From Glycera tridactyla (Eukaryota): a stretch of DNA of 64,000 bases. The stretch is taken from assembly GCA_965644265.1 (NCBI GenBank), contig OZ286468.1:98952001-99016000 (forward strand), given 5' to 3'. Below the pieces are notes generated by a model. The model ran no database searches. It was not told where the DNA came from and saw only the letters and a program-made list of their open reading frames with translations. A program made the translations under genes and the position numbers. How positions within the stretch are numbered: position 1 is the stretch's first letter; each line of letters starts with the position of its first letter. Below are positions 52,323 to 62,625 of this stretch, piece by piece.

Positions 52323-53469
52323 TCGTAGTTAATCATTAAGACCCCGGACCTCCTCGCTAGTTCTCTGCATTGCCGACAGGGACGCTTTACCTTGCATATA
52401 AGCATTCAGACATTAGTGATCCCAAAGACTTACATTTTTCCGGCCATTTTACAACAAACTTGCATTCTGATGAGTTGGATGAATTAGGTGAACTATTTCT
52501 TGGTTTTTGATCTTTTTCTATCCAACATCTATCATTGTGTGACTGCTTGATTCCATTTTAGATAAGAAACTCATTGCAACCCTATCTCAGTGATATTGGC
52601 TCCATACAGATATTTAATATTGCCTATTTTCCGACTGTTTTCACTGGCTTCCTGACAGTTTTACAAGATTTTTAAGCTTAAACAGCAGCGTTCAGTGTTG
52701 CTCAGACGTTCAATATTCATCAATGTGTGGCAGAACTACAATTAACCCCTCCAGCGCTACTTGGTCAGACTGGTGCGTCGGACGTGGTAGCGCCGACCAA
52801 GCGCGCGCTGTCGTGGTTGATCACTAAGATAACGAACAGACCCCACATACTCAAGGGAGATCGGTGGAAGCTCAGAACAGAAAGATGTTATGATATATGA
52901 TGAAAGTATCAGTATATATCCCCGTCACATAAATGCACAATCTCAAGAATAGGAAACGGTAACTCGGAAATCATCCCCAATATGATTCACAATAGGCCTC
53001 ACCCTAGAAGATTAGAAGTGCAGAAATGTTCATTATGACAGGCAGATAGATGACCCGGCAAGACGCAATTTGTTCAAATACTTGCATTGTCACTAATATT
53101 GATCACCAGCATATCTGGAGTGAGGCTTCAGAATATCATCACATGTTTAATATCATATCATTAAGATAAGATAAGGGAAAAACTCAGCATAACACTCACC
53201 TATGTGACCAGACTAGACTCAATTAATTTGTCTCATACCCAATCCGTGCTCGAGGATATACAATGATGGGTCAGTATTAAGGTCCCTGAACATTGTGACC
53301 CTGTGAACAGATATTCAGATTGAAATATACCTGTACAAGCTCGGATCATGGAGATTGCCAGCTAACTATCACACTGACCTATATCAACCAGCAAGACCCA
53401 ATTCTTGTGTCTCATGATTGAACTTTCGTCACTAATATCAAATAACGAAACAGGATTGAGAATTCAAAA

Positions 53470-53769
53470 TTTAATTTACGAGTAAATTGTTTTTTGAGGA
53501 ATGTATAAGGATTAATTTTAGAGGCCTGACTCAGTAGCTCCGCGAGAGGTCAGGATATTTATTAGCGAGTCCGTTTATAGGCTTCCAGGAATTTTGTAAA
53601 ATATGACAGTATGCAAGTTTGGTGTGTTTATTTATGACCTTGATATCAGGAGTTTTGTTTGACAAAAAGCTTTTTGTTTTAGGAGTTTTTGTCAAAATAG
53701 AGGGCGCTTTTGCGCCCTATATAGGGCCGAGAGGCCACGCGATCGACCTCACTTCCAGTTTTTCTCGAA
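53470..53769 (+). repeat. Split direct repeat A1 (300 bp)
   Basis: Runs from tttaatttacgagtaaatt to ttttctcgaa; direct copy at 59896-60195. Confidence 0.95.
53718..53757 (+). promoter_or_regulatory. Putative Pol II core promoter of the element (TATA box plus initiator)
   Basis: TATATA at 53718-53723 and an Inr-like TCA(+1)CTTC with A at 53751, 33 bp downstream. It is preceded by a perfect hairpin AGGGCGC-TTTT-GCGCCCT (53701-53718). The transcription start is inferred, not observed. Confidence 0.55.
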
Positions 53770-53778
53770 GGTGTGTAC

Positions 53779-54549
53779 ATGATTGGAATACCTCGTAGAT
53801 ACATGGCATGGTTTAAGCCGAAAGCGCCCTGGATACCGGTTGACCAGTGGTTAGGGCGGCAGCCTACCGCGGTAGTCTTAGGTCACTCCTTTGCACGGAG
53901 GCAAGAGGCAGGTTTGTTGGTAGAAATTGACAACCTGGGTCTGTCCCAGAGTTTAGCAGACGGAGGCATAACACGTGGAGCAGCTAATGCTTTAGCTCTC
54001 AATGTAGATGACAACTTTTCCGAGGTTAATTTCAGGAGTTGCAATTTTGTGAGGGAATATGAGGAAGATAGAGATATAGCTGACAAATTGTTAGTGTTGG
54101 GGGCCCTTTCGCCGGATGTATTGCTCTTTGATCTTGGATCTAATGATCTTACAAAATCTTGGAATGATCCAAGGGAGGTAGTGGCGGACTTGTTTGAGTT
54201 AGGGGTTCGCCTGCGTGCCAGAAGGAGGGTCAAAATAGTGGCATACATGTCATGCTTAGACCGCGCTAATACCATTTCATCGTTCCGCTCCAATGCTAAC
54301 CAGTTCAATCACATGTTGTGTGCTTGTTGCGAAGGCCTGGAGGGCCAAATGTTTCACCGAACCAGAGGGTTTGGTTCAGTTGAACCAGGCACACCAAGCA
54401 CAGTAGAGGAGTGGAGTGAGGACGGAATTCATCCTTTGGAAGGCACCAGGCATTTCCGAAAATACACAAAAGAAATGAGGCAAGCCATTCTGGAGTGTCT
54501 GCCGGGTCTGGGGCGCTTGGTGAGGAATTTTCCAGCCATGCGAGACTAA
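53779..54549 (+). CDS. SGNH/GDSL-family hydrolase (esterase-like) carried by the retrotransposon
   Basis: The 258-aa track ORF has its first ATG at 53779 and an alternative ATG at 53803. Block I VVLGHSF (Ser39, 53887), block III DLGSNDL (Asn124) and block V DGIHP (Asp217/His220, 54421) are all intact, with no stops. Confidence 0.85.
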   Translation: MIGIPRRYMAWFKPKAPWIPVDQWLGRQPTAVVLGHSFARRQEAGLLVEIDNLGLSQSLADGGITRGAANALALNVDDNFSEVNFRSCNFVREYEEDRDIADKLLVLGALSPDVLLFDLGSNDLTKSWNDPREVVADLFELGVRLRARRRVKIVAYMSCLDRANTISSFRSNANQFNHMLCACCEGLEGQMFHRTRGFGSVEPGTPSTVEEWSEDGIHPLEGTRHFRKYTKEMRQAILECLPGLGRLVRNFPAMRD

Positions 54550-54555
54550 CTGGAG

Positions 54556-54683
54556 GTATGCAATAAAAGGGGGGGGGTGGGAGGGGAAGGAGGGGAGGGA
54601 GGGTGGGTGCTCTCAAATTTGATAGTGAAACTTGTTGACAAGCTTGTATGTTTCTCGTCCCTTCGTTGTTGTTAATGTTTCAG
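54556..54683 (+). promoter_or_regulatory. Inter-ORF signal block: splice-donor-like GTATG, AATAAA, G-rich tract and splice acceptor
   Basis: AG|GTATGC at 54556, AATAAA at 54562-54567, G-runs at 54569-54607, then a pyrimidine-rich tract ending TTTCAG at 54683, one base before the gag ATG (54685). Confidence 0.55.
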
Positions 54684-54684
54684 G

Positions 54685-56638
54685 ATGGCAAAACGCATGG
54701 GTCAAGATGACCTGGGAGGTATTCCCAGGAAGAAACCAGCAACTCTCGGGCGTATGCCTGAAGCGTTTGAAAGTACGACTGAATCTCAGTTCATAGTGGA
54801 TCCATATGCGAATTTATTGGACCCATCCATACCAGGTAATGATACATCTGTATCTTCTCAGAACATGGACTTGGGGAGTCAGATCCCTTGTGGTCAGAAA
54901 CAACCAGAACAGACAATGCAATCACACACGCAAACATCGAGCACCAATGCCAATGCTGATTTGGGCGGGATGTTGAACTCACTCAGGCGGATAGCATCGG
55001 ACACCTGTTCAATGCAGAATAGGAATATTGTTGGCGGGATCGGACGCCCAGTTCGCAACCCTTTTCCCACCTGGGGAGGGTAGGTTTAACCCTTATGCCA
55101 TGCCTCCTCCTTATCATCATCAGTTACAGGACAGTGCTCAGACCCAAGGTTTGACAGACCCTTCTGTTGCGGGTCTCCGCAACGATTTGGAGCGTGTCGA
55201 AAATATGGCGCTGCAACATATGGCTGTGCTGACAGACCTTTTGGGTAACATCAGTAACCGAGTTGATGGCTTATCTAGAGCATCAGATGGAGGTCTACAC
55301 GTTCGACACCTTGGGCCAACAGCGGGAGGAAGCATGAGGCAAGGTATGGTGAAAAATTCTTCAAAAAATAATTTTGATACCTCATACACTCAAAGTACAA
55401 GTACGCAGGACATAGATGAAAGACAGAGTAATCCCGACCGGCACACCGGTCTCAGTAGAAGGGGACTGGGACATGCAGGCTTGTTCGGTAATTTGGATGT
55501 AGGTAATGGTATGGGAGCAAACATGACAGAAAGTAATGGACAGGGGTTTGACAATGGGAACCAACGACGCATGACTAATGACATAACAGGACGGTCAGAT
55601 TTCGACGAACGCCGGGGATTGAGTAGTTTCAATCCAGGACCAATGGTCTCAGATATGAATCATACAATGTTCAATTCCGATTCTTCAATGTGGAACCCTT
55701 GGTCTCCGCCAATACATAACATATCTACCTTCGAACGCTTAGAAGGGCTACGCACACGTGCAACCAATGGTAGATTTCAAGGTTCCGATGCAATGGTGTC
55801 CGCCACTTCAGCGGCGGGTTTCAGGGATCCTGCCACACATGGTGTGAATAATTGTAATATAGTTTCTCCCTTTGGAGCTATTCACCCTGGTCTAGGTTCT
55901 GCTAGTGCAGCGGGTTAGTTAAGGGATCCTGAACCTAGGAAAATAATAATGGCAGGATTACCTATTGGTTATAATGTTGAACTAAGCTCGAGGATAGATA
56001 TCTGGCAGGACAGGTTCATAGACCTGGGGGAATTGTTACAGCCAATAAAAACCACTAGGAAGCACTATGTGGTTGACGGCAGGACCGGAGAATTTGTTCT
56101 TTCAAAAAAGAAACGGTCCATAGACAGCATACACGATTGGGACGAGGCATTTTTAATATTTCAGGCAATTTACAATGCCCATCCCTTTAAATCTGCCCAA
56201 CAAAAAGCAAAAGATGGCTTTGATTTGCTTACATATGGAAGCGAGGTCAGGGAAATTGCGGCGCACGGAGGTGACTATTTATTATACGATGAGACATTCA
56301 GAAGTTTGCGTTCCACCATGGCTGAGCCTTACCCTTGGTCAACATTTCACCTGGTTTTGCATCAGAAATCTAACAGACCTAGTACCTCTCCTCCCGAAAA
56401 GGTAACTAACAAGAACGAATTTAAGAATTCCAAGCTTAAAAAGGGTTTCTGTACGTTCTATCATGCCCAAGGAAAGCGTTGTCTATACGATAAATGCACA
56501 TTCAAACATTTTTGCCCTTCATGCAGTGGGAAGCACCCGGTATACGCATGCAAGTCATCCTCAAACAATGGAGGAAGCACAAAGAAGGATAGAGCTGGAG
56601 GAAATAATGACGCCGGTAATTCCCCATCGTCTCAATAA
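54685..56638 (+). pseudogene. gag: gag-like ORF1 of the Ngaro element, disrupted by one frameshift and one in-frame stop
   Basis: Three track ORFs: 54685-55083, then a shift to 55028-55918, then an in-frame TAG at 55916-55918 continuing into 55949-56638. The C-terminal part has a DIRS/Ngaro gag-like core (IWQDRFIDLGELL...WDEAFLIF...YDETFR) and tandem zinc fingers C-x9-C-x4-C-x3-H and C-x2-C-x3-H-x4-C. Confidence 0.75.
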
Positions 56639-58184
56639 CCTTCTTCAGGGATACCCAGAAGGTGAGATAGCTTACCTAGTGAAGGGTTTCACCTGGGGCT
56701 TTGACATAGGTTTCAAAAGAATATCCCCAGCCTATAGGGCCAGGAACCCTTTATCCATAAAAGATTTGTCTGAAGAAGCCAAGTCCTTGGTTCACAAGGA
56801 TGTTGAACTGGGTCGAATTGTAGGCCCTTTTAAGACACCACCATTTGTGAATTTTCAAGTGTCTCCAATCACTGTAGTCCCGAAAAGAGAGCAGGGAGCT
56901 TATAGGCTAATACACAACCTCTCCGCGCCTTATAATGAATTGGCCATAAATCACCATATTCCGGACACGGAGGCTTCTGTTTCTTACACTACAGTTAAAT
57001 CGGTGGTAGATTTTGTAATTCAGACAGGTAAAATGGCATATCTTTGCAAAACGGATGTAAAGTCTGCTTTCCGGATAATTCCGGTTAAACCGGAACAATA
57101 TCATTTACTAGGTTCAAAATTAGAGGAGGATTACTTTGTGAACAGATGCCTAGCAATGGGTGCACGATCTTCGTGTAGAACTTTTGAACGCTTTTCATCA
57201 GCGTTGCATTGGATCTGTGAGAACAAACTGGGAATACACCAGGTGGCGCATATGCTGGACGACTTTTGTCTGGTAGGTAAGGGTAGAGATGAATGCAAAC
57301 GTCACCTGGTGGCATTCCAGAATCTTTGCTCAGAACTTGGAGTGCCTCTATGCCCAAAGAAGATGGAGGAACCAACTCAGTGCTTATCATCTTTGGGTAT
57401 AGAGATAGACGTATGCAAAGGGTTTGTTCGGGTACCAAGAGATAAATTGCATAAATACGCGGACCAAATCAACAACATTCTTGAATCCAGGTCTTGTACT
57501 TTCGGATCTCTTCGTTCATTGATCGGGAAGCTGAATTGGGCCTCTTCTTTAATTGTACCGGGCAGATCATTTCTCAGAGGTCTGATTAATGCAACCAAAG
57601 GTTATACGAATCCGGCTTTCTTAGTCAAATTCACCACAGATTTGAAAGATGATTTGCTCATGTGGCAATCTTTTCTGGTGAGTTATAATGGTTTCTCCTT
57701 TTTGCGGGAGCTGACTTTGAACAAACACACAGTGGAGAGTATAGCTACGGACGCTTCTAAAATAGGGGCGGGAGGAGTATATGGGAAGCTATGGTTCCAT
57801 TTGAGTTACAAAGGGAAGTGGTCCATGCAAAACATCGCATATCTGGAATTCTTCCCGATACTAGTAGCTTTAGTTACTTTTCGAGTTTCTCTTAGGCACA
57901 GAAAGGTAATTTTTAAATGCGACAATATGGCGGTTTGTGAAGTGATCAACAAGAGGTCAGCTAAAGACCATGACCTCATGAGGTTAATGCGCCATATAAT
58001 GTTATTTGCATTGTTAAATGATATTGATGTGTTTGCAGAGCATATACCTGGGGAGGACAATGTCCTACCTGATCTCATCTCTCGTTCTCGTTGTTCACAG
58101 GAATTGTTGCTAGCGAAGGGTATGGCGATACACCCGGTATCAATCTCAGACGGGTACAATCCGACAATCTGTGGCATTTGGTGA
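56463..58184 (+). CDS. pol: Reverse transcriptase / RNase H ORF (573 aa, open), overlapping gag and YR in a different frame
   Basis: RT motifs YRLIHNLS, KTDVKSAFRIIPV, LAMGARSS and HMLDDF (57252-57263, with M in place of Y). RNase H motifs ATDAS, IAYLEF, CDN and HIPGEDNVLPDLISR. The true start or expression mode is uncertain. Confidence 0.92.
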   Translation: MPKESVVYTINAHSNIFALHAVGSTRYTHASHPQTMEEAQRRIELEEIMTPVIPHRLNNLLQGYPEGEIAYLVKGFTWGFDIGFKRISPAYRARNPLSIKDLSEEAKSLVHKDVELGRIVGPFKTPPFVNFQVSPITVVPKREQGAYRLIHNLSAPYNELAINHHIPDTEASVSYTTVKSVVDFVIQTGKMAYLCKTDVKSAFRIIPVKPEQYHLLGSKLEEDYFVNRCLAMGARSSCRTFERFSSALHWICENKLGIHQVAHMLDDFCLVGKGRDECKRHLVAFQNLCSELGVPLCPKKMEEPTQCLSSLGIEIDVCKGFVRVPRDKLHKYADQINNILESRSCTFGSLRSLIGKLNWASSLIVPGRSFLRGLINATKGYTNPAFLVKFTTDLKDDLLMWQSFLVSYNGFSFLRELTLNKHTVESIATDASKIGAGGVYGKLWFHLSYKGKWSMQNIAYLEFFPILVALVTFRVSLRHRKVIFKCDNMAVCEVINKRSAKDHDLMRLMRHIMLFALLNDIDVFAEHIPGEDNVLPDLISRSRCSQELLLAKGMAIHPVSISDGYNPTICGIW

Positions 58185-59059
58185 GAACGATGGTGGATGG
58201 TGCGTTTGCAAAGTCAACTGTCACGAGTTACAAGGCTATTTGGGAACAATATTGTAAGTTTGTACACATGATGGCACTTCCCTGGTCCCAGGCGTCGGTA
58301 TATTTGTTTGTAGCCTTTCTGGCAAACAAGGGTTTGAAAGCTTCGTCTATAAAATCAAAACTGTCTGGTTTGTCCCATGGATTCAAGTGTCGTAATTGGG
58401 AGGATTTCAGCAAGCATTATGTAGTGGGGAAAATGCTAAGTGGTCTGTCACAAGATACGGGATCGAGAGACAGTAGAATGCCTATAAGTCGTGCTAGTCT
58501 GATACAGCTACTTGATTGCATTCGCAGAATGCTACCAGTTGGTTATGAACAAATTCTGCTATGTACGATGTTCTTATGGGCGTATAGCGCCTGTTTAAGG
58601 GTACCGGAATATGCTTTCACAGGGACAAGCGACCATTATATAAGACTGAGAGATTTAAAAAGAATCAGCTCGGGGGGTGATGTAGTGGCACATCACCTAA
58701 CGTTAAGATCTTATAAGTTTTCATCTGGTCAAAAGTAATTTATCATTGAACAACTGGATAAACCATGGTGTCCAGTAGCCACGATGGAGAGTTATTTGAA
58801 ATACAGAGGTAATTGTCCAGGCCCGTTATTTGTCAAGGAGGGACGTCCCATTTCAAGTAGATATGTCAACGGATGGTTGGCTAGGTTGGGACCCTTAGTA
58901 TATAAGAAAGGTGCGGTTATCAGCAGTCATTCCTTCAGAATTGGCCGCTGTTCAGATTGGGCTGAGGAAGGTTTAACAGACCAGCAAATCAGAACCAAAG
59001 GTAGATGGGCTTCAGATGCTTTCAAGAGTTATGTCCGTCCTGATGTAGTCAATTTATAG
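58091..59059 (+). pseudogene. Tyrosine recombinase (YR) ORF interrupted by an in-frame TAA
   Basis: Track ORFs 58091-58738 and 58784-59059 are in the same frame, separated by TAA at 58736-58738 (SSGQK*FIIEQLDKPWCPVATM). Catalytic motifs: LR(V)PEY, RSYKF, SHSFRIG (HxxR), GRWAS and FKSY (Tyr). Confidence 0.9.
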
Positions 59060-59092
59060 TGGCCGCCTGAGAGCATCGCTCCTCGGGGCAGG

Positions 59093-59895
59093 CGGCTGTG
59101 TCCTTATTGAAGCTTATTTCTGCTTATCGGAATCTGAAGACCACCAACCTCGTTTTGGGATCACCTCCTACGACATCTTGATCTGTGTAAATTGTGAAAT
59201 AAATGTTTGTGTGAAGGGGAAGATTGGTTATATGTAATTTGTTAATTGATTAGCCTCGGTGTAGGCTAATTACTCCATTAGTCATGAAGTAGGCTAGTTA
59301 TCTCACTTCGGGAAATAGCTAAATATTTGCCAATTGTGAGCAATTAGCCTAATGCTAATTGCTAATTAGCTATTACACTCGCTAATTCGTGGCAAACAAG
59401 GCTAATGGGGAATTACGAAGATGGCTACAGTACAATTCCGCCAGGGCGAAATCAAATGATTTCTTAGGCTCTTGGGATGGAAAGGGGCTTCATCCTAAGA
59501 TCTTGAGATTTCCGGTCAATCTTCTTAAGTTGAAGACTAAGCTCTTCTTCACGACCTTAGGTCTCGGTGCCCGGAAATGGGACTCCAGTACTGTGCCTCT
59601 GTACGCTGTAAAACTCCGGGAGAAAATTCCATAGTGGTGCCCAGAGGCACAGGTAGCAAGATTGTACAATTTCCCACAATATAACTTTGTGATAAGAATT
59701 TTTGTTGTGTCTTTATTCTACCGGTGTCATCATGCTTGGCAATTGTGGAAACCATCGGGTCATCAGGAACCCATTCAGGGTCTGAAGAATCCACAAGTGT
59801 CATCTAGGTTTGAGAACATTAAGTCATCATGGGATCATTAAGGGTTTCTCAAGAAGAAGAGAGGAGAAACCAGTCGGATAGGAAAGAGTCAAAAA
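59093..59895 (+). repeat. Split direct repeat B1 (803 bp)
   Basis: Runs from cggctgtgtcc to gagtcaaaaa; direct copy at 60236-61038 (offset 1143). Confidence 0.95.
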
Positions 59896-60195
59896 TTTAA
59901 TTTACGAGTAAATTGTTTTTTGAGGAATGTATAAGGATTAATTTTAGAGGCCTGACTCAGTAGCTCCGCGAGAGGTCAGGATATTTATTAGCGAGTCCGT
60001 TTATAGGCTTCCAGGAATTTTGTGAAATATGACAGTATGCAAGTTTGGTGTGTTTATTTATGACCTTGATATCAGGAGTTTTGTTTGAGAAAAAGCTTTT
60101 TGTTTTAGGGGTTTTTGTCAAAATAGAGGGCGCTTTTGCGCCCTATATAAGGCCAAGAGGCCACGCGATCGACCTCACTTCCAGTTTTTCTCGAA
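59896..60195 (+). repeat. Split direct repeat A2
   Basis: Directly abuts B1 and is followed by a 40 bp unique C-rich spacer (60196-60235) before B2. Confidence 0.95.
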
Positions 60196-60235
60196 CCACC
60201 ACCACCCCACCACCACCAGTTGTTGAACGCAGAGA

Positions 60236-61038
60236 CGGCTGTGTCCTTATTGAAGCTTATTTCTGCTTATCGGAATCTGAAGACCACCAACCTCGTTCTG
60301 GGATCACCTCCTACGACATCTTGATCTGTGTAAATTGTGAAATAAATGTTTGTGTGAAGGGGGAGATTGGTTATATGTAATTTGTTAATTGATTAGCCTC
60401 GGTGTAGGCTAATTACTCCATTAGTCATGAAGTAGGCTAGCTATCTCACTTTGGGAAATAGCTAATTTATTGCCAATTGTGAGCAATTAGCCTAATGCTA
60501 ATTGCTAATTAGCTATTACACTCGCTAATTCGTGGCAAACAAGGCTAATGGGGAATTACGAAGATGGCTACAGTACAATTCCGCCAGGGCGAAATTAAAT
60601 GATTTCTTAGGCTCTTGGGATGGGAAGGGGCTTCATCCTAAGATCTTGAGATTTCCGGTCAATCTTCTTAAGTTGAAGACTAAGCTCTTCTTCACGACCT
60701 TAGGTCTCGGTGCCCGGAAATGGGACTCCGGTACTGTGCCTCTGTACGCTGTAGAACTCCGGGAAAAAATTCCATAGTGGTGCCCAGAGGCACAGGTAGC
60801 AAGATTGTACAATTTCCCACAATATAACTTTGTAATAAGAATTTTTGTTGTGTCTTTATTCTACCGGTGTCATCATGCTTGGCAATTGTGGAAACTATCG
60901 GGTCATCAGGAACCCATTCAGGGTCTGAAAAATCCACAAGTGTCATCTAGGTTTGAGAACATTAAGTCATCATGGGATCATTAAGGGTTTCTCAAGAAGA
61001 AGAGAGGAGAAACCAGTCGGATAGGAAAGAGTCAAAAA
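60236..61038 (+). repeat. Split direct repeat B2
   Basis: Copy of B1; the element ends at gagtcaaaaa|cattg. Confidence 0.95.
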
Positions 61039-61730
61039 CATTGTTATCGGGTCATGGTCGACCCATTAGCCAACAACCGCACTAACAGAAAATATGGACA
61101 ACGCAACTTGGCATCATATATATGAGTGGACTTTCGATATCTTCTATATCCTGCGTTTAGAAATGTGATCACGATCAAGTTTATTTGTATATTTCACCCT
61201 GGTGGCTGATGATGTTGATTCCACACAAAATTTATAACAGGGAGGCGACCGTTTCGTATGGATTCGCGGCCAGAGATTAGCGGATAATGACATGACCCTG
61301 CAATCAGATCACCAACATTCATGCAGTGTGTATGGAATCAGGTTGGATGAGCACTTGGGGTCCTTTAGAGTACAGCTGTACCATTGGAACCATCACAGGA
61401 TCAAACATGGTGTTCTGAACAATATAGAAGTATTTGACGCATTCAGATTTGATTATGGCAAGAAACAATGGGGTATTGGTCGTCATGTTATACACCACAA
61501 GTGAAGAGGGGTGAATATTTGCAGGGCCAATAGCCAATGGTTTCCTGCACATTTACCATGAATTAACATCTCAGTATTGATTTACGGAACGCAATGGCTA
61601 CTGGGGGATCAAATGCGTCCCGACAACAAGGGTGTCAGCAGTAGAAAACAGTCACGTGACTGCGCATTATCGTAGACATGTGCCAGTGGTCCGACAAGTC
61701 ATACACAACCTCCCAATTTGATAATAGTAA

Positions 61731-61815
61731 TAATAATGATAATGATAATCATGATAATAATGATAATTATAATTATAATGATAATTATGATGATAATTTT
61801 GATAATTATGATAAT
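61731..61815. repeat. (AAT/GAT)n trinucleotide tract
   Basis: Read directly. Confidence 0.9.
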
Positions 61816-62130
61816 AGCGATTCATATGGCACCAATATCCATAGCATGTTCGAAAGGGAAAAACATACATGTCTACCAGCCTCCACGATTCAATAGTGGG
61901 ATAATATGACATGGGGTCATTGAATATATTATTATCATTTTTTTTTCAGAGCATCGTCACAATAATCCTGGTACCGTCGAATAGGATCGGAAGTCCATAT
62001 CTTTGAAGTGATCAACTCTCCATGACTGTGACCGTGGTGATATTTTCAACAGTAAATGACCTCTGAACGGATCCCAAATGCCTATAATAGGCATTTTTTG
62101 TGCGGCCGAAGACTGTATGGAAGAAAGCAC

Positions 62131-62205
<75 letters not shown>

Positions 62206-62207
62206 AT
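62131..62207. repeat. (TA)n microsatellite
   Basis: Read directly. Confidence 0.95.
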
Positions 62208-62625
62208 CGAGGGGGTTGAAGGACAAGACATGTGATGGACCATTCCTAGGATGTCATTTTTGTCTGACTCAATCGCAGTCAGAAGCGTGCCCAGTAGGAA
62301 TTCCAACGACAACATGGAGTTTGCCATATTCCATTAGTCGGTTTCACGAGCAGTCTACGTCCTGCGACCAGAGATTTGAACCATATGTTCATATGTCAAA
62401 GTTATTACCATGGGTGCCATAATTCAAGGATCTTCCTCCTCTCTGATTGAAGTTGAAATGATATAAAGGTCACAACCACTTATGGGTGTTATGGCAGGCC
62501 GGCTAAGTTTGGATACTCTCTGTTCGTATAGTAAAAAGACCAGGTCGTAACACATTCATCATCTCACAAACATACATGGGGTTCATTCGCTTAGAGTTAA
62601 CGGCATTAATCAACCCAACGGAGTA

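Follow-up and report, generated by a model that had tools for sequence, protein, structure and literature searches.

The stretch of DNA analysed here (64,000 nucleotides of Glycera tridactyla, assembly GCA_965644265.1, contig OZ286468.1, positions 98,952,001 to 99,016,000 of the forward strand; hereafter the window) contains a full-length retrotransposon of the Ngaro type, in which the first open reading frame (ORF) codes for an esterase of the SGNH/GDSL fold. This hydrolase gene lies between the first copy (A1) of a split direct repeat and gag. It is under strong purifying selection, its amino acid (aa) sequence is conserved to the same degree as that of the reverse transcriptase (RT) and more than the N-terminus of gag, and we consider it almost certainly a functional gene that has been maintained by selection. 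A donor-like site at the end of A1 and an acceptor-like site at the gag start codon are kept across families and organisms, which is what an intron containing the hydrolase would predict, and a long-range helix with covarying arms joins the predicted 5' end of the transcript to the hydrolase stop codon. The explanation that we favour, with moderate confidence when it is taken as a whole, is that the window holds a slightly decayed copy of a large and recently active Ngaro lineage, with its esterase in an intron of the 5' leader, a gag that would depend on splicing, and the helix. All the features of the element described below are on the plus strand.

An SGNH Hydrolase as the First Gene of the Element

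The hydrolase frame is uninterrupted, whether read from a GTG at 53773 or from the first ATG at 53779, down to the TAA at 54547-54549. The ORF counted from the ATG (53779-54549) codes for a stand-alone protein of 256 aa in which no further domain was found. Its catalytic residues (Ser37, Asn122, Asp215, and His218) fall within the motifs G35-H36-S37, G120-S121-N122-D123, and D215-G-I-H218, and in an alignment of 70 sequences G35, H36, and S37 (block I), N122 and D123 (block III), and D215 and H218 (block V) are invariant or nearly so. Compared with the Pfam family Lipase_GDSL_2 the window protein gave an E-value of 2.8e-5 and 25.1 bits, under the curated cut-off of 32.9, and 60 of the 70 family members matched this profile at E <= 0.01. 

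Word-based protein searches with the esterase and with the N-terminus of gag returned no match, but an exhaustive search with a hydrolase profile (built from nine intact copies and scored against 1.84 billion representatives) did find relatives, 296 of them, four at E-values below 1e-30. The profile also matched GDSL lipases in the PDB, PAF-AH Ib, and the ORF1 esterase of ZfL2-1 (4c1b, E 8e-4). A metagenome scan produced only a contig that had already been found. The AlphaFold (AF2) model made with a deep alignment had a predicted local distance difference test score (pLDDT) of 92.6; a first model, from a 9-sequence alignment, was discarded (pLDDT 56). By AF2, Foldseek, and VIA-align alike, the fold is a flavodoxin-like, three-layer alpha/beta/alpha arrangement. 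The top Foldseek matches were all SGNH enzymes, and VIA-align gave Z 17.0 with the GDSL-like lipase 4hf7 and Z 16.3 with PAF-AH Ib (root-mean-square deviation 2.9 Å over 176 residues), the two alignments spanning 174-176 residues. The nearest clusters in the ESM Atlas were eukaryotic GDSL-like proteins, most commonly from molluscs. It is likely that the protein is an active esterase. By analogy with the ORF1 esterases of long interspersed nuclear elements (LINEs), and by that analogy only, its probable targets would be lipids or membranes, while particles are being assembled or transported.

The catalytic residues have been lost in some relatives. In one sibling locus (L006:1543-2301, minus strand) a Phe replaces the nucleophilic Ser (LGHFF), and gag, RT, and the tyrosine recombinase (YR) are also decayed. 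A metagenome contig (L041:222-1091) has a full-length ORF ahead of gag in which GHS, GSND, and DGIHP have become GHE, GANE, and NGFTP. In two families (L010:1559-2434 and L018:1519-2394) an in-frame ATG within repeat A lengthens the hydrolase frame by 37 codons; this ATG is upstream of the TATA box and, for that reason, is probably not in the RNA.

Selection, Gene Order, and Distribution

A DNA search of the same genome found, besides the two repeat copies of the window itself, about 30 places with 67-94% identity, and the hydrolase ORF was uninterrupted in nine further loci. Between families, the ratio of non-synonymous to synonymous substitution rates (dN/dS) of the hydrolase was 0.02-0.08 where dS can be estimated; elsewhere the synonymous sites were saturated, with four-fold identity of 0.2-0.4 and a proportion of non-synonymous differences of 0.04-0.2. 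An apparent excess of synonymous differences (a proportion above 0.75) was rejected as a signal, the four-fold sites showing plain saturation. Across families the aa identity of the hydrolase was 71-77%, that of the RT 70-78%, and that of the gag N-terminus 46-69%. The initial annotation had described the ORF as an intact SGNH hydrolase placed first in an Ngaro element, and motifs, fold, and dN/dS all agree that it is a real, selected gene of this kind.

In every locus where both genes were present (about 20 diverged copies) the hydrolase preceded the gag N-terminus on the same strand. A recombinase search of the genome returned 2,493 first-look candidates, of which 124 were scored, being mostly open frames with 44-50% identity, and the hydrolase profile gave 33,063 first-look candidates, with mostly uninterrupted frames among the 141 scored. 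The genome holds a very large Ngaro population. Cross-matching of the two scored lists by hand gave 27 distant pairs. In all of them the hydrolase comes 3.1-4.5 kb ahead of the recombinase, with both on the same strand, and a hydrolase downstream of the recombinase was never found, which makes the hydrolase-first order the rule in this genome. The order extends to other organisms. The metagenome contigs L037, L039, and L041 carry hydrolase relatives with 29-39% identity, each followed by a gag starting with MPPKR, and a 1.8 Mb contig of another organism (L042) has, in succession, a repeat, the hydrolase, gag, the start of the RT, and a repeat. The 5' position had been called atypical, and this holds for the searchable literature, where the Ngaro hydrolase is placed after the YR, but not for this genome, where all the sampled Ngaro copies have it at the 5' end.

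Older and decayed fragments of hydrolase or gag were also seen just upstream of complete elements, at L012:550-1287 and L018:866-1136, which suggests nested or tandem insertions.

Promoter and Splice Signals

The splice signals and the helix were read in the window clade, in the sibling loci numbered with L, and in L037, L039, L041, and L042; most copies in the genome belong to other, distant families. In the window, a TATA box (TATATAGG, 53718-53725, with TATATA from 53718) is followed by an initiator-like CTCA with its A at 53751. The predicted transcription start and the 5' arm of the helix share the segment 53748-53760, of which 53751-53760 are paired in this copy. A TATA-like box was located in ten copies, and in all ten, the distant L037 included, it was 30-31 nt before the 5' arm.

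The donor-like site AAG/GTGTGT (53768-53776, boundary 53770/53771) matches the consensus MAG/GTRAGT in eight of nine positions. A donor with 7-9 of the nine consensus positions, 8-31 nt before the hydrolase ATG, was present in all lineages except L041. The sequence of the window is shared by L002, L004, and L006, and the others were AAG/GTAACT in L013 and L016, AAG/GTGAAT in L024, and ACG/GTGAGT in L042 (8/9 each), and AAG/GTACAT in L010, L015, and L018, GAA/GTAAGT in L037, and ACG/GTAAGA in L039 (7/9 each). Repeat A1, which would contain the promoter and exon 1 (53466-53769, 98.4% identical to its second copy, A2), ends 1 nt before the donor boundary, as repeat A does in five full-length copies (the window, L031, and L033-L035). 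The candidate intron therefore coincides exactly with the interval that separates A1 from the gag ATG.

At the other end, a pyrimidine-rich tract leads to the acceptor TTTCAG/G (tract and acceptor at 54651-54684). The AG ends at 54683, and a single base (G, 54684) separates it from the gag ATG, which starts at 54685. A YAG was found 0-1 nt before the gag ATG in 13 of the 14 copies read (a ten-copy set plus L027, L029, L037, and L039), the exception being L041 with an AG 5 nt upstream, and the pyrimidine fraction in the 22 nt before the acceptor was 0.55-0.77. The spacers between the hydrolase stop and gag are otherwise unalignable across families, and yet donor and acceptor are kept. The positions given in the initial annotation for the TATA box (53718), the initiator A (53751), donor, ORF, AATAAA, and acceptor were all confirmed in the sequence, and the ORF order and the GT and AG signals proved to be retained in diverged copies and in other organisms, these features being more than a product of chance.

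The contexts of the two start codons also differ. In the unspliced leader the esterase AUG comes before any other AUG, and its context is weak, the base at -3 being a pyrimidine in most copies. The gag AUG has a C at -3 in the unspliced RNA of most families, and once the exons are joined it would have a purine at -3 and a G at +4 in those families whose gag begins with ATGG, the window included.

A Long-Range Helix Between the Leader and the Stop Codon

The initial annotation did not mention a long-range helix, with arms that covary, in which the 5' end of the transcript pairs with the region of the hydrolase stop codon. In the window clade the sequence at the predicted start, CTCACTTCCAG, is the reverse complement of the one at the stop codon, CTGGAAGTGAG. 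The 3' arm (54548-54557 in the window) overlaps the TAA and includes a second donor-like site, GAG/GTATGC, at 54555/54556; it was always located -3 to +4 nt from the end of the stop codon. Of 13 copies, 12 have an ungapped helix of 10-22 base pairs (bp) with its arms at these two fixed positions, and in nine copies no control window of the same locus, out of about 180, equalled the length observed. The helix of the window copy has no more than 10 bp, which was matched by 18 of 178 controls, and for this reason the case rests on the family and not on this copy alone.

The sequence of the arms varies by lineage (a perfect 22-mer in L037, a 15-mer in L039, an 11-mer in L024 and L029), with compensatory changes in register at 10 of 15 positions between the window clade and L037, and at 6 of 14 between the window clade and L039. 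The imperfect pairs are all G.U in the sense strand, which suggests RNA rather than DNA. From the first T of the TATA box to the beginning of the 5' arm the distance is 30-31 nt in all ten copies with a box, and the first transcribed base would be expected at this point. Foldings were computed for RNAs of about 920-1,020 nt, beginning at the predicted first base and ending shortly beyond the gag AUG. For 11 of 12 copies the minimum free energy structure included the helix, whose mean pair probabilities were 0.78-0.99. As the 3' arm lies inside the candidate intron, the helix would exist only in the unspliced RNA. We think it quite likely that the helix is functional as RNA.

Two of the more distant contigs differ in this region. 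L041 lacks the long-range helix and has a local hairpin after the stop that holds both arm-like sequences. In L042 (7800-8900) GGTGAGTC precedes the hydrolase ATG and is repeated immediately downstream of the stop, and its complement, GACTCACC, follows about 40 nt further; the helix of this contig is therefore arranged differently and would cover the donor-like sites.

Put together, these signals suggest the following scheme. Transcription would start about 30 nt after the TATA box, at CTCACTT. The unspliced RNA would be the genomic RNA, and also the only RNA in which the esterase AUG comes first. A splice from 53770/53771 to 54683/54684 would remove the entire esterase ORF together with the spacer, leaving the gag AUG some 20 nt from the cap and in a good context. 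The helix would most likely loop out the 0.8 kb ORF and approximate the splice sites, or else mark or repress the unspliced RNA. It seems fairly probable that this splice is used, and the hydrolase would then probably sit in an intron that has to be removed for the capsid protein to be made. More tentatively, it is possible that the lineage expresses gag only after removal of this leader intron, the helix being a switch that separates the genomic and esterase RNA from the gag mRNA.

Alternative Explanations

A number of observations weigh against this scheme. The window hydrolase scores under the curated cut-off of Lipase_GDSL_2, and the oxyanion-hole Gly of block II was not located, with no conserved Gly after strand 2 (82-87, FRSC). 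Exact look-ups in the assembly collection found no record of the sibling's gag or of the window esterase. The quality of the donors is no better than moderate (GTGTGT, GTACAT, GTAACT), the predicted exon 1 of L037 contains an upstream ATG, and the second donor-like site in the 3' arm means that a different, short intron is possible. The donor-like GTGAG of that arm may be only the complement of the initiator-like CTCAC. Besides, a search of the genome for spliced-form DNA copies with the exact-junction pattern (3 mismatches) found none, and a looser pattern gave three matches, all in host P450-like genes and not in Ngaro. This lack is to be expected if the spliced RNA is not reverse transcribed, and equally if there is no splicing.

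That there is no splicing, and that both proteins come from the unspliced RNA, appears to us unlikely. The helix would in that case let ribosomes shunt past the esterase ORF, or reinitiate after it, at the gag AUG about 100 nt beyond, and GT and AG would be conserved for other reasons. It would suit the failure to find spliced-form copies in the genome searches, the weak context of the esterase AUG in most copies (the pyrimidine at -3), and the way in which the helix encloses precisely the ORF, with one arm at the first bases and the other at the stop codon. However, it leaves unexplained a donor of 7-9 out of 9 at the A1 boundary and a YAG at the gag ATG in lineages whose spacers cannot be aligned, and the C at -3 in CAG/ATG makes a poor unspliced start, whereas the spliced form has a purine there. 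We find it decidedly unlikely that the intron in use is a short one, from the donor-like site after the stop (54555/54556; A/GTGAG in most families) to the same acceptor, though it may coexist with the long splice. Removal of such an intron would bring the gag AUG within a few bases of the esterase stop, in reach of coupled termination-reinitiation, and the helix would control access to the donor. GTGAG or GTATG does follow the stop in most copies, and L042 also has GGTGAGTC at this point, with the complement 40 nt further. In all copies of the window clade there is in addition a G-rich tract of variable length (54569-54609 in the window, with runs of 3-8 G) after the donor-like site, and G runs after a donor are the classic arrangement of an intronic enhancer. 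But the tract is lineage-specific (it is absent from L024 and L029, L037, and L039), the donor is weak or absent in L039 (GTGACT) and L024 (GTGGGT), and the site may be nothing but the complement of the CTCAC start motif. The G-rich tract itself may be a splicing enhancer, a quadruplex, or without any role.

The remaining possibilities concern what else the helix or the AATAAA might be. In long terminal repeat (LTR) elements of the Tf1 type the first bases of the RNA pair with the downstream primer-binding site (self-priming), and in retroviruses the packaging signal lies beyond the splice donor. A self-priming-like or packaging signal, marking the unspliced RNA for reverse transcription or packaging, would be in keeping with a 5' arm that starts at the predicted first transcribed base, with a 3' arm in the predicted intron and so confined to unspliced RNA, and with the absence of hydrolase-less copies from the spliced-form searches made. 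Still, the paired site is about 790 nt from the 5' end and does not adjoin the terminal repeat, a primer at that place would presumably fail to account for the A1-B1-A2-B2 structure, and the length of the arms varies from 10 to 22 nt, which makes a replication signal very unlikely in our view. According to the initial annotation, three RNAs may come from a single promoter, and one of these would be a short esterase mRNA with the AATAAA as its poly(A) signal. This hexamer (54562-54567, 13 nt after the stop and followed by the G-rich tract) is private to the window copy; the 94% sibling has AATAAG at its position, and it is missing from all the other families and from the contigs of other organisms. 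As a feature of the family the short polyadenylated mRNA was rejected because the AATAAA is not conserved, and we hold the three-RNA proposal to be highly improbable. We give the least credence of all, close to none, to the inverted repeat being a relic or a site of DNA rearrangement, be it the terminal inverted repeats of a captured cassette or paired sites where the element's own recombinase would invert the esterase segment. The two arms do flank the ORF as terminal inverted repeats would, but the 5' arm is in repeat A, which occurs without the cassette as A2, and both the inversion switch and the cassette relic were rejected on the grounds of the constant orientation (in every two-gene locus and in 27 further pairs) and of imperfect pairs that are G.U only in the sense strand, pointing to RNA.

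The Element and the State of This Copy

Self-BLAST of the window recovered the split direct repeats in the order A1 ... B1-A2-B2. The 3' repeat block (59088-61038) consists of B1 (59088-59895), A2 (59892-60195), and B2 (60229-61038), with 97.9% identity between B1 and B2; together with the value given above for A1 and A2, this confirms the split repeats and the Ngaro context that had been proposed. The same layout was seen in L031 and L033-L035. B1 and A2 overlap by 4 nt (59892-59895), and between A2 and B2 there is a stretch of 33 nt rich in ACA and CCA (60196-60228); nothing equivalent follows A1.

Between the repeats there are, in this order, the hydrolase, a gag-like region, the RT with RNase H, and the YR. 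The gag-like region (54685-56638) has a knuckle-like motif, CX2CX3HX4C, and is broken into three frame pieces (54685-55083, 55028-55918, and 55949-56638), in siblings being a single open frame of about 650-690 codons. The RT/RNase H ORF (56463-58184) matched Pfam RVT_1 with 36.8 bits in the window and 45.5 bits in a sibling, both above the cut-off of 29.6, and gave a weak match to RVT_3, just under its cut-off. The YR (58091-59059) is in two pieces (58091-58738 and 58784-59059) with one internal TAA; its profile support is weak (XerD, E 7.7e-4; Phage_integrase, E 0.03), and the R...HxxR...Y residues are kept in siblings (LRVSEY, HSFRIGR, GRW.SDAFK.Y). No methyltransferase was detected, there being no further Pfam domain in the RT/RNase H ORF or up to the overlapping recombinase, in the window or in the sibling. 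The absence of a methyltransferase separates Ngaro from DIRS1-like and PAT-like elements.

The window copy is not fully intact, its gag being in three pieces and its recombinase interrupted by a stop, but its hydrolase ORF is. Both genes are uninterrupted in several siblings. In L031, L033, L034, and L035 the A repeats are identical and the B repeats 99.6-100% identical, which identifies them as young insertions, and in three of these four all four frames are open. The young copy L033 (A repeats 100% identical) has a frameshift at the C-terminus of the recombinase (L033:6024-6093) that removes the catalytic Tyr. Just beyond the element there is an AT-rich palindromic minisatellite with (TA/TATA)n repeats (61700-62230). 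The window also holds 13 masked runs of N, and none of its other long ORFs matched a Pfam family.

Comparison with Known Systems

To our knowledge almost nothing is known about the expression of DIRS and Ngaro elements, and the role of the hydrolase is unproven. Goodwin and Poulter, in 2004, are said by a paper citing them to have reported an extra SGNH hydrolase ORF in Ngaro elements of Xenopus. In the searchable literature the Xenopus elements (Repbase DIRS-53_XT and DIRS-54_XT) have this ORF after the recombinase and overlapping it, with a function that is unproven (PMC9210276; PMC7192593; PMC6681497). The element of the window has in common with them the split direct repeats, gag, RT/RNase H, and YR, the lack of a methyltransferase, and the accessory SGNH hydrolase. 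It differs in that the hydrolase is the first ORF, separate from the others, in the interval between A1 and gag, and accompanied by splice signals and a helix. Only about 30 nt lie between the end of the YR (59059) and B1 (59088), and the Xenopus type of layout, with the hydrolase after the YR, is not the one found here. The searchable literature that combines Ngaro and SGNH describes no 5' position of the hydrolase, and that on Ngaro, introns, and splicing, judged by titles and abstracts, treats no Ngaro intron. An accessory SGNH hydrolase in Ngaro was known already, and what appears to be new is its 5' position, which indicates that the place of the accessory gene in these elements is not fixed.

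SGNH esterases have been acquired by other retroelements as well. In LINEs of the CR1, L2, and RTEX groups the esterase is part of the ORF1 protein, and that of ZfL2-1 (PDB 4c1b) has weak esterase activity and binds both acidic phospholipids and liposomes (PMC3905857). These are also retroelement SGNH esterases encoded upstream of the polymerase, but theirs is fused to a coiled coil and replaces gag, whereas here a stand-alone protein of 256 aa is found beside gag, in another class of elements, and it does not resemble 4c1b more closely than it resembles bacterial GDSL lipases. The Vesta LTR elements (ORF3) and the Athena elements of bdelloids have GDSL esterase ORFs 3' of pol, whose evolution within the genome did not, in that study, depart from neutrality (PMC5408684). 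They share with the present case an independent capture of a GDSL/SGNH gene, intact catalytic residues, and a stand-alone accessory gene, but the Ngaro gene comes ahead of gag and shows strong purifying selection. The Ngaro hydrolase bears on the function of retroelement-borne SGNH esterases in general, and on RNA regulation in YR retrotransposons: it is as conserved as the RT across thousands of copies, and it is located where a simple splice would decide between esterase and genomic RNA on one side and gag mRNA on the other.

The closest parallel to the proposed scheme comes from retroviruses and pararetroviruses, which have a splice donor in the leader, with the unspliced RNA being the genome and the spliced RNA serving other genes. 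The Ngaro lineage would share with them the single promoter, the donor in the leader, and an RNA element restricted to unspliced molecules that could tell genome from mRNA. The roles would be reversed: here it is gag that would need the splice, and the accessory gene that would be expressed from the unspliced RNA. If this is true, a splicing and packaging logic like that of retroviruses would have arisen independently in Ngaro elements, with its roles exchanged.

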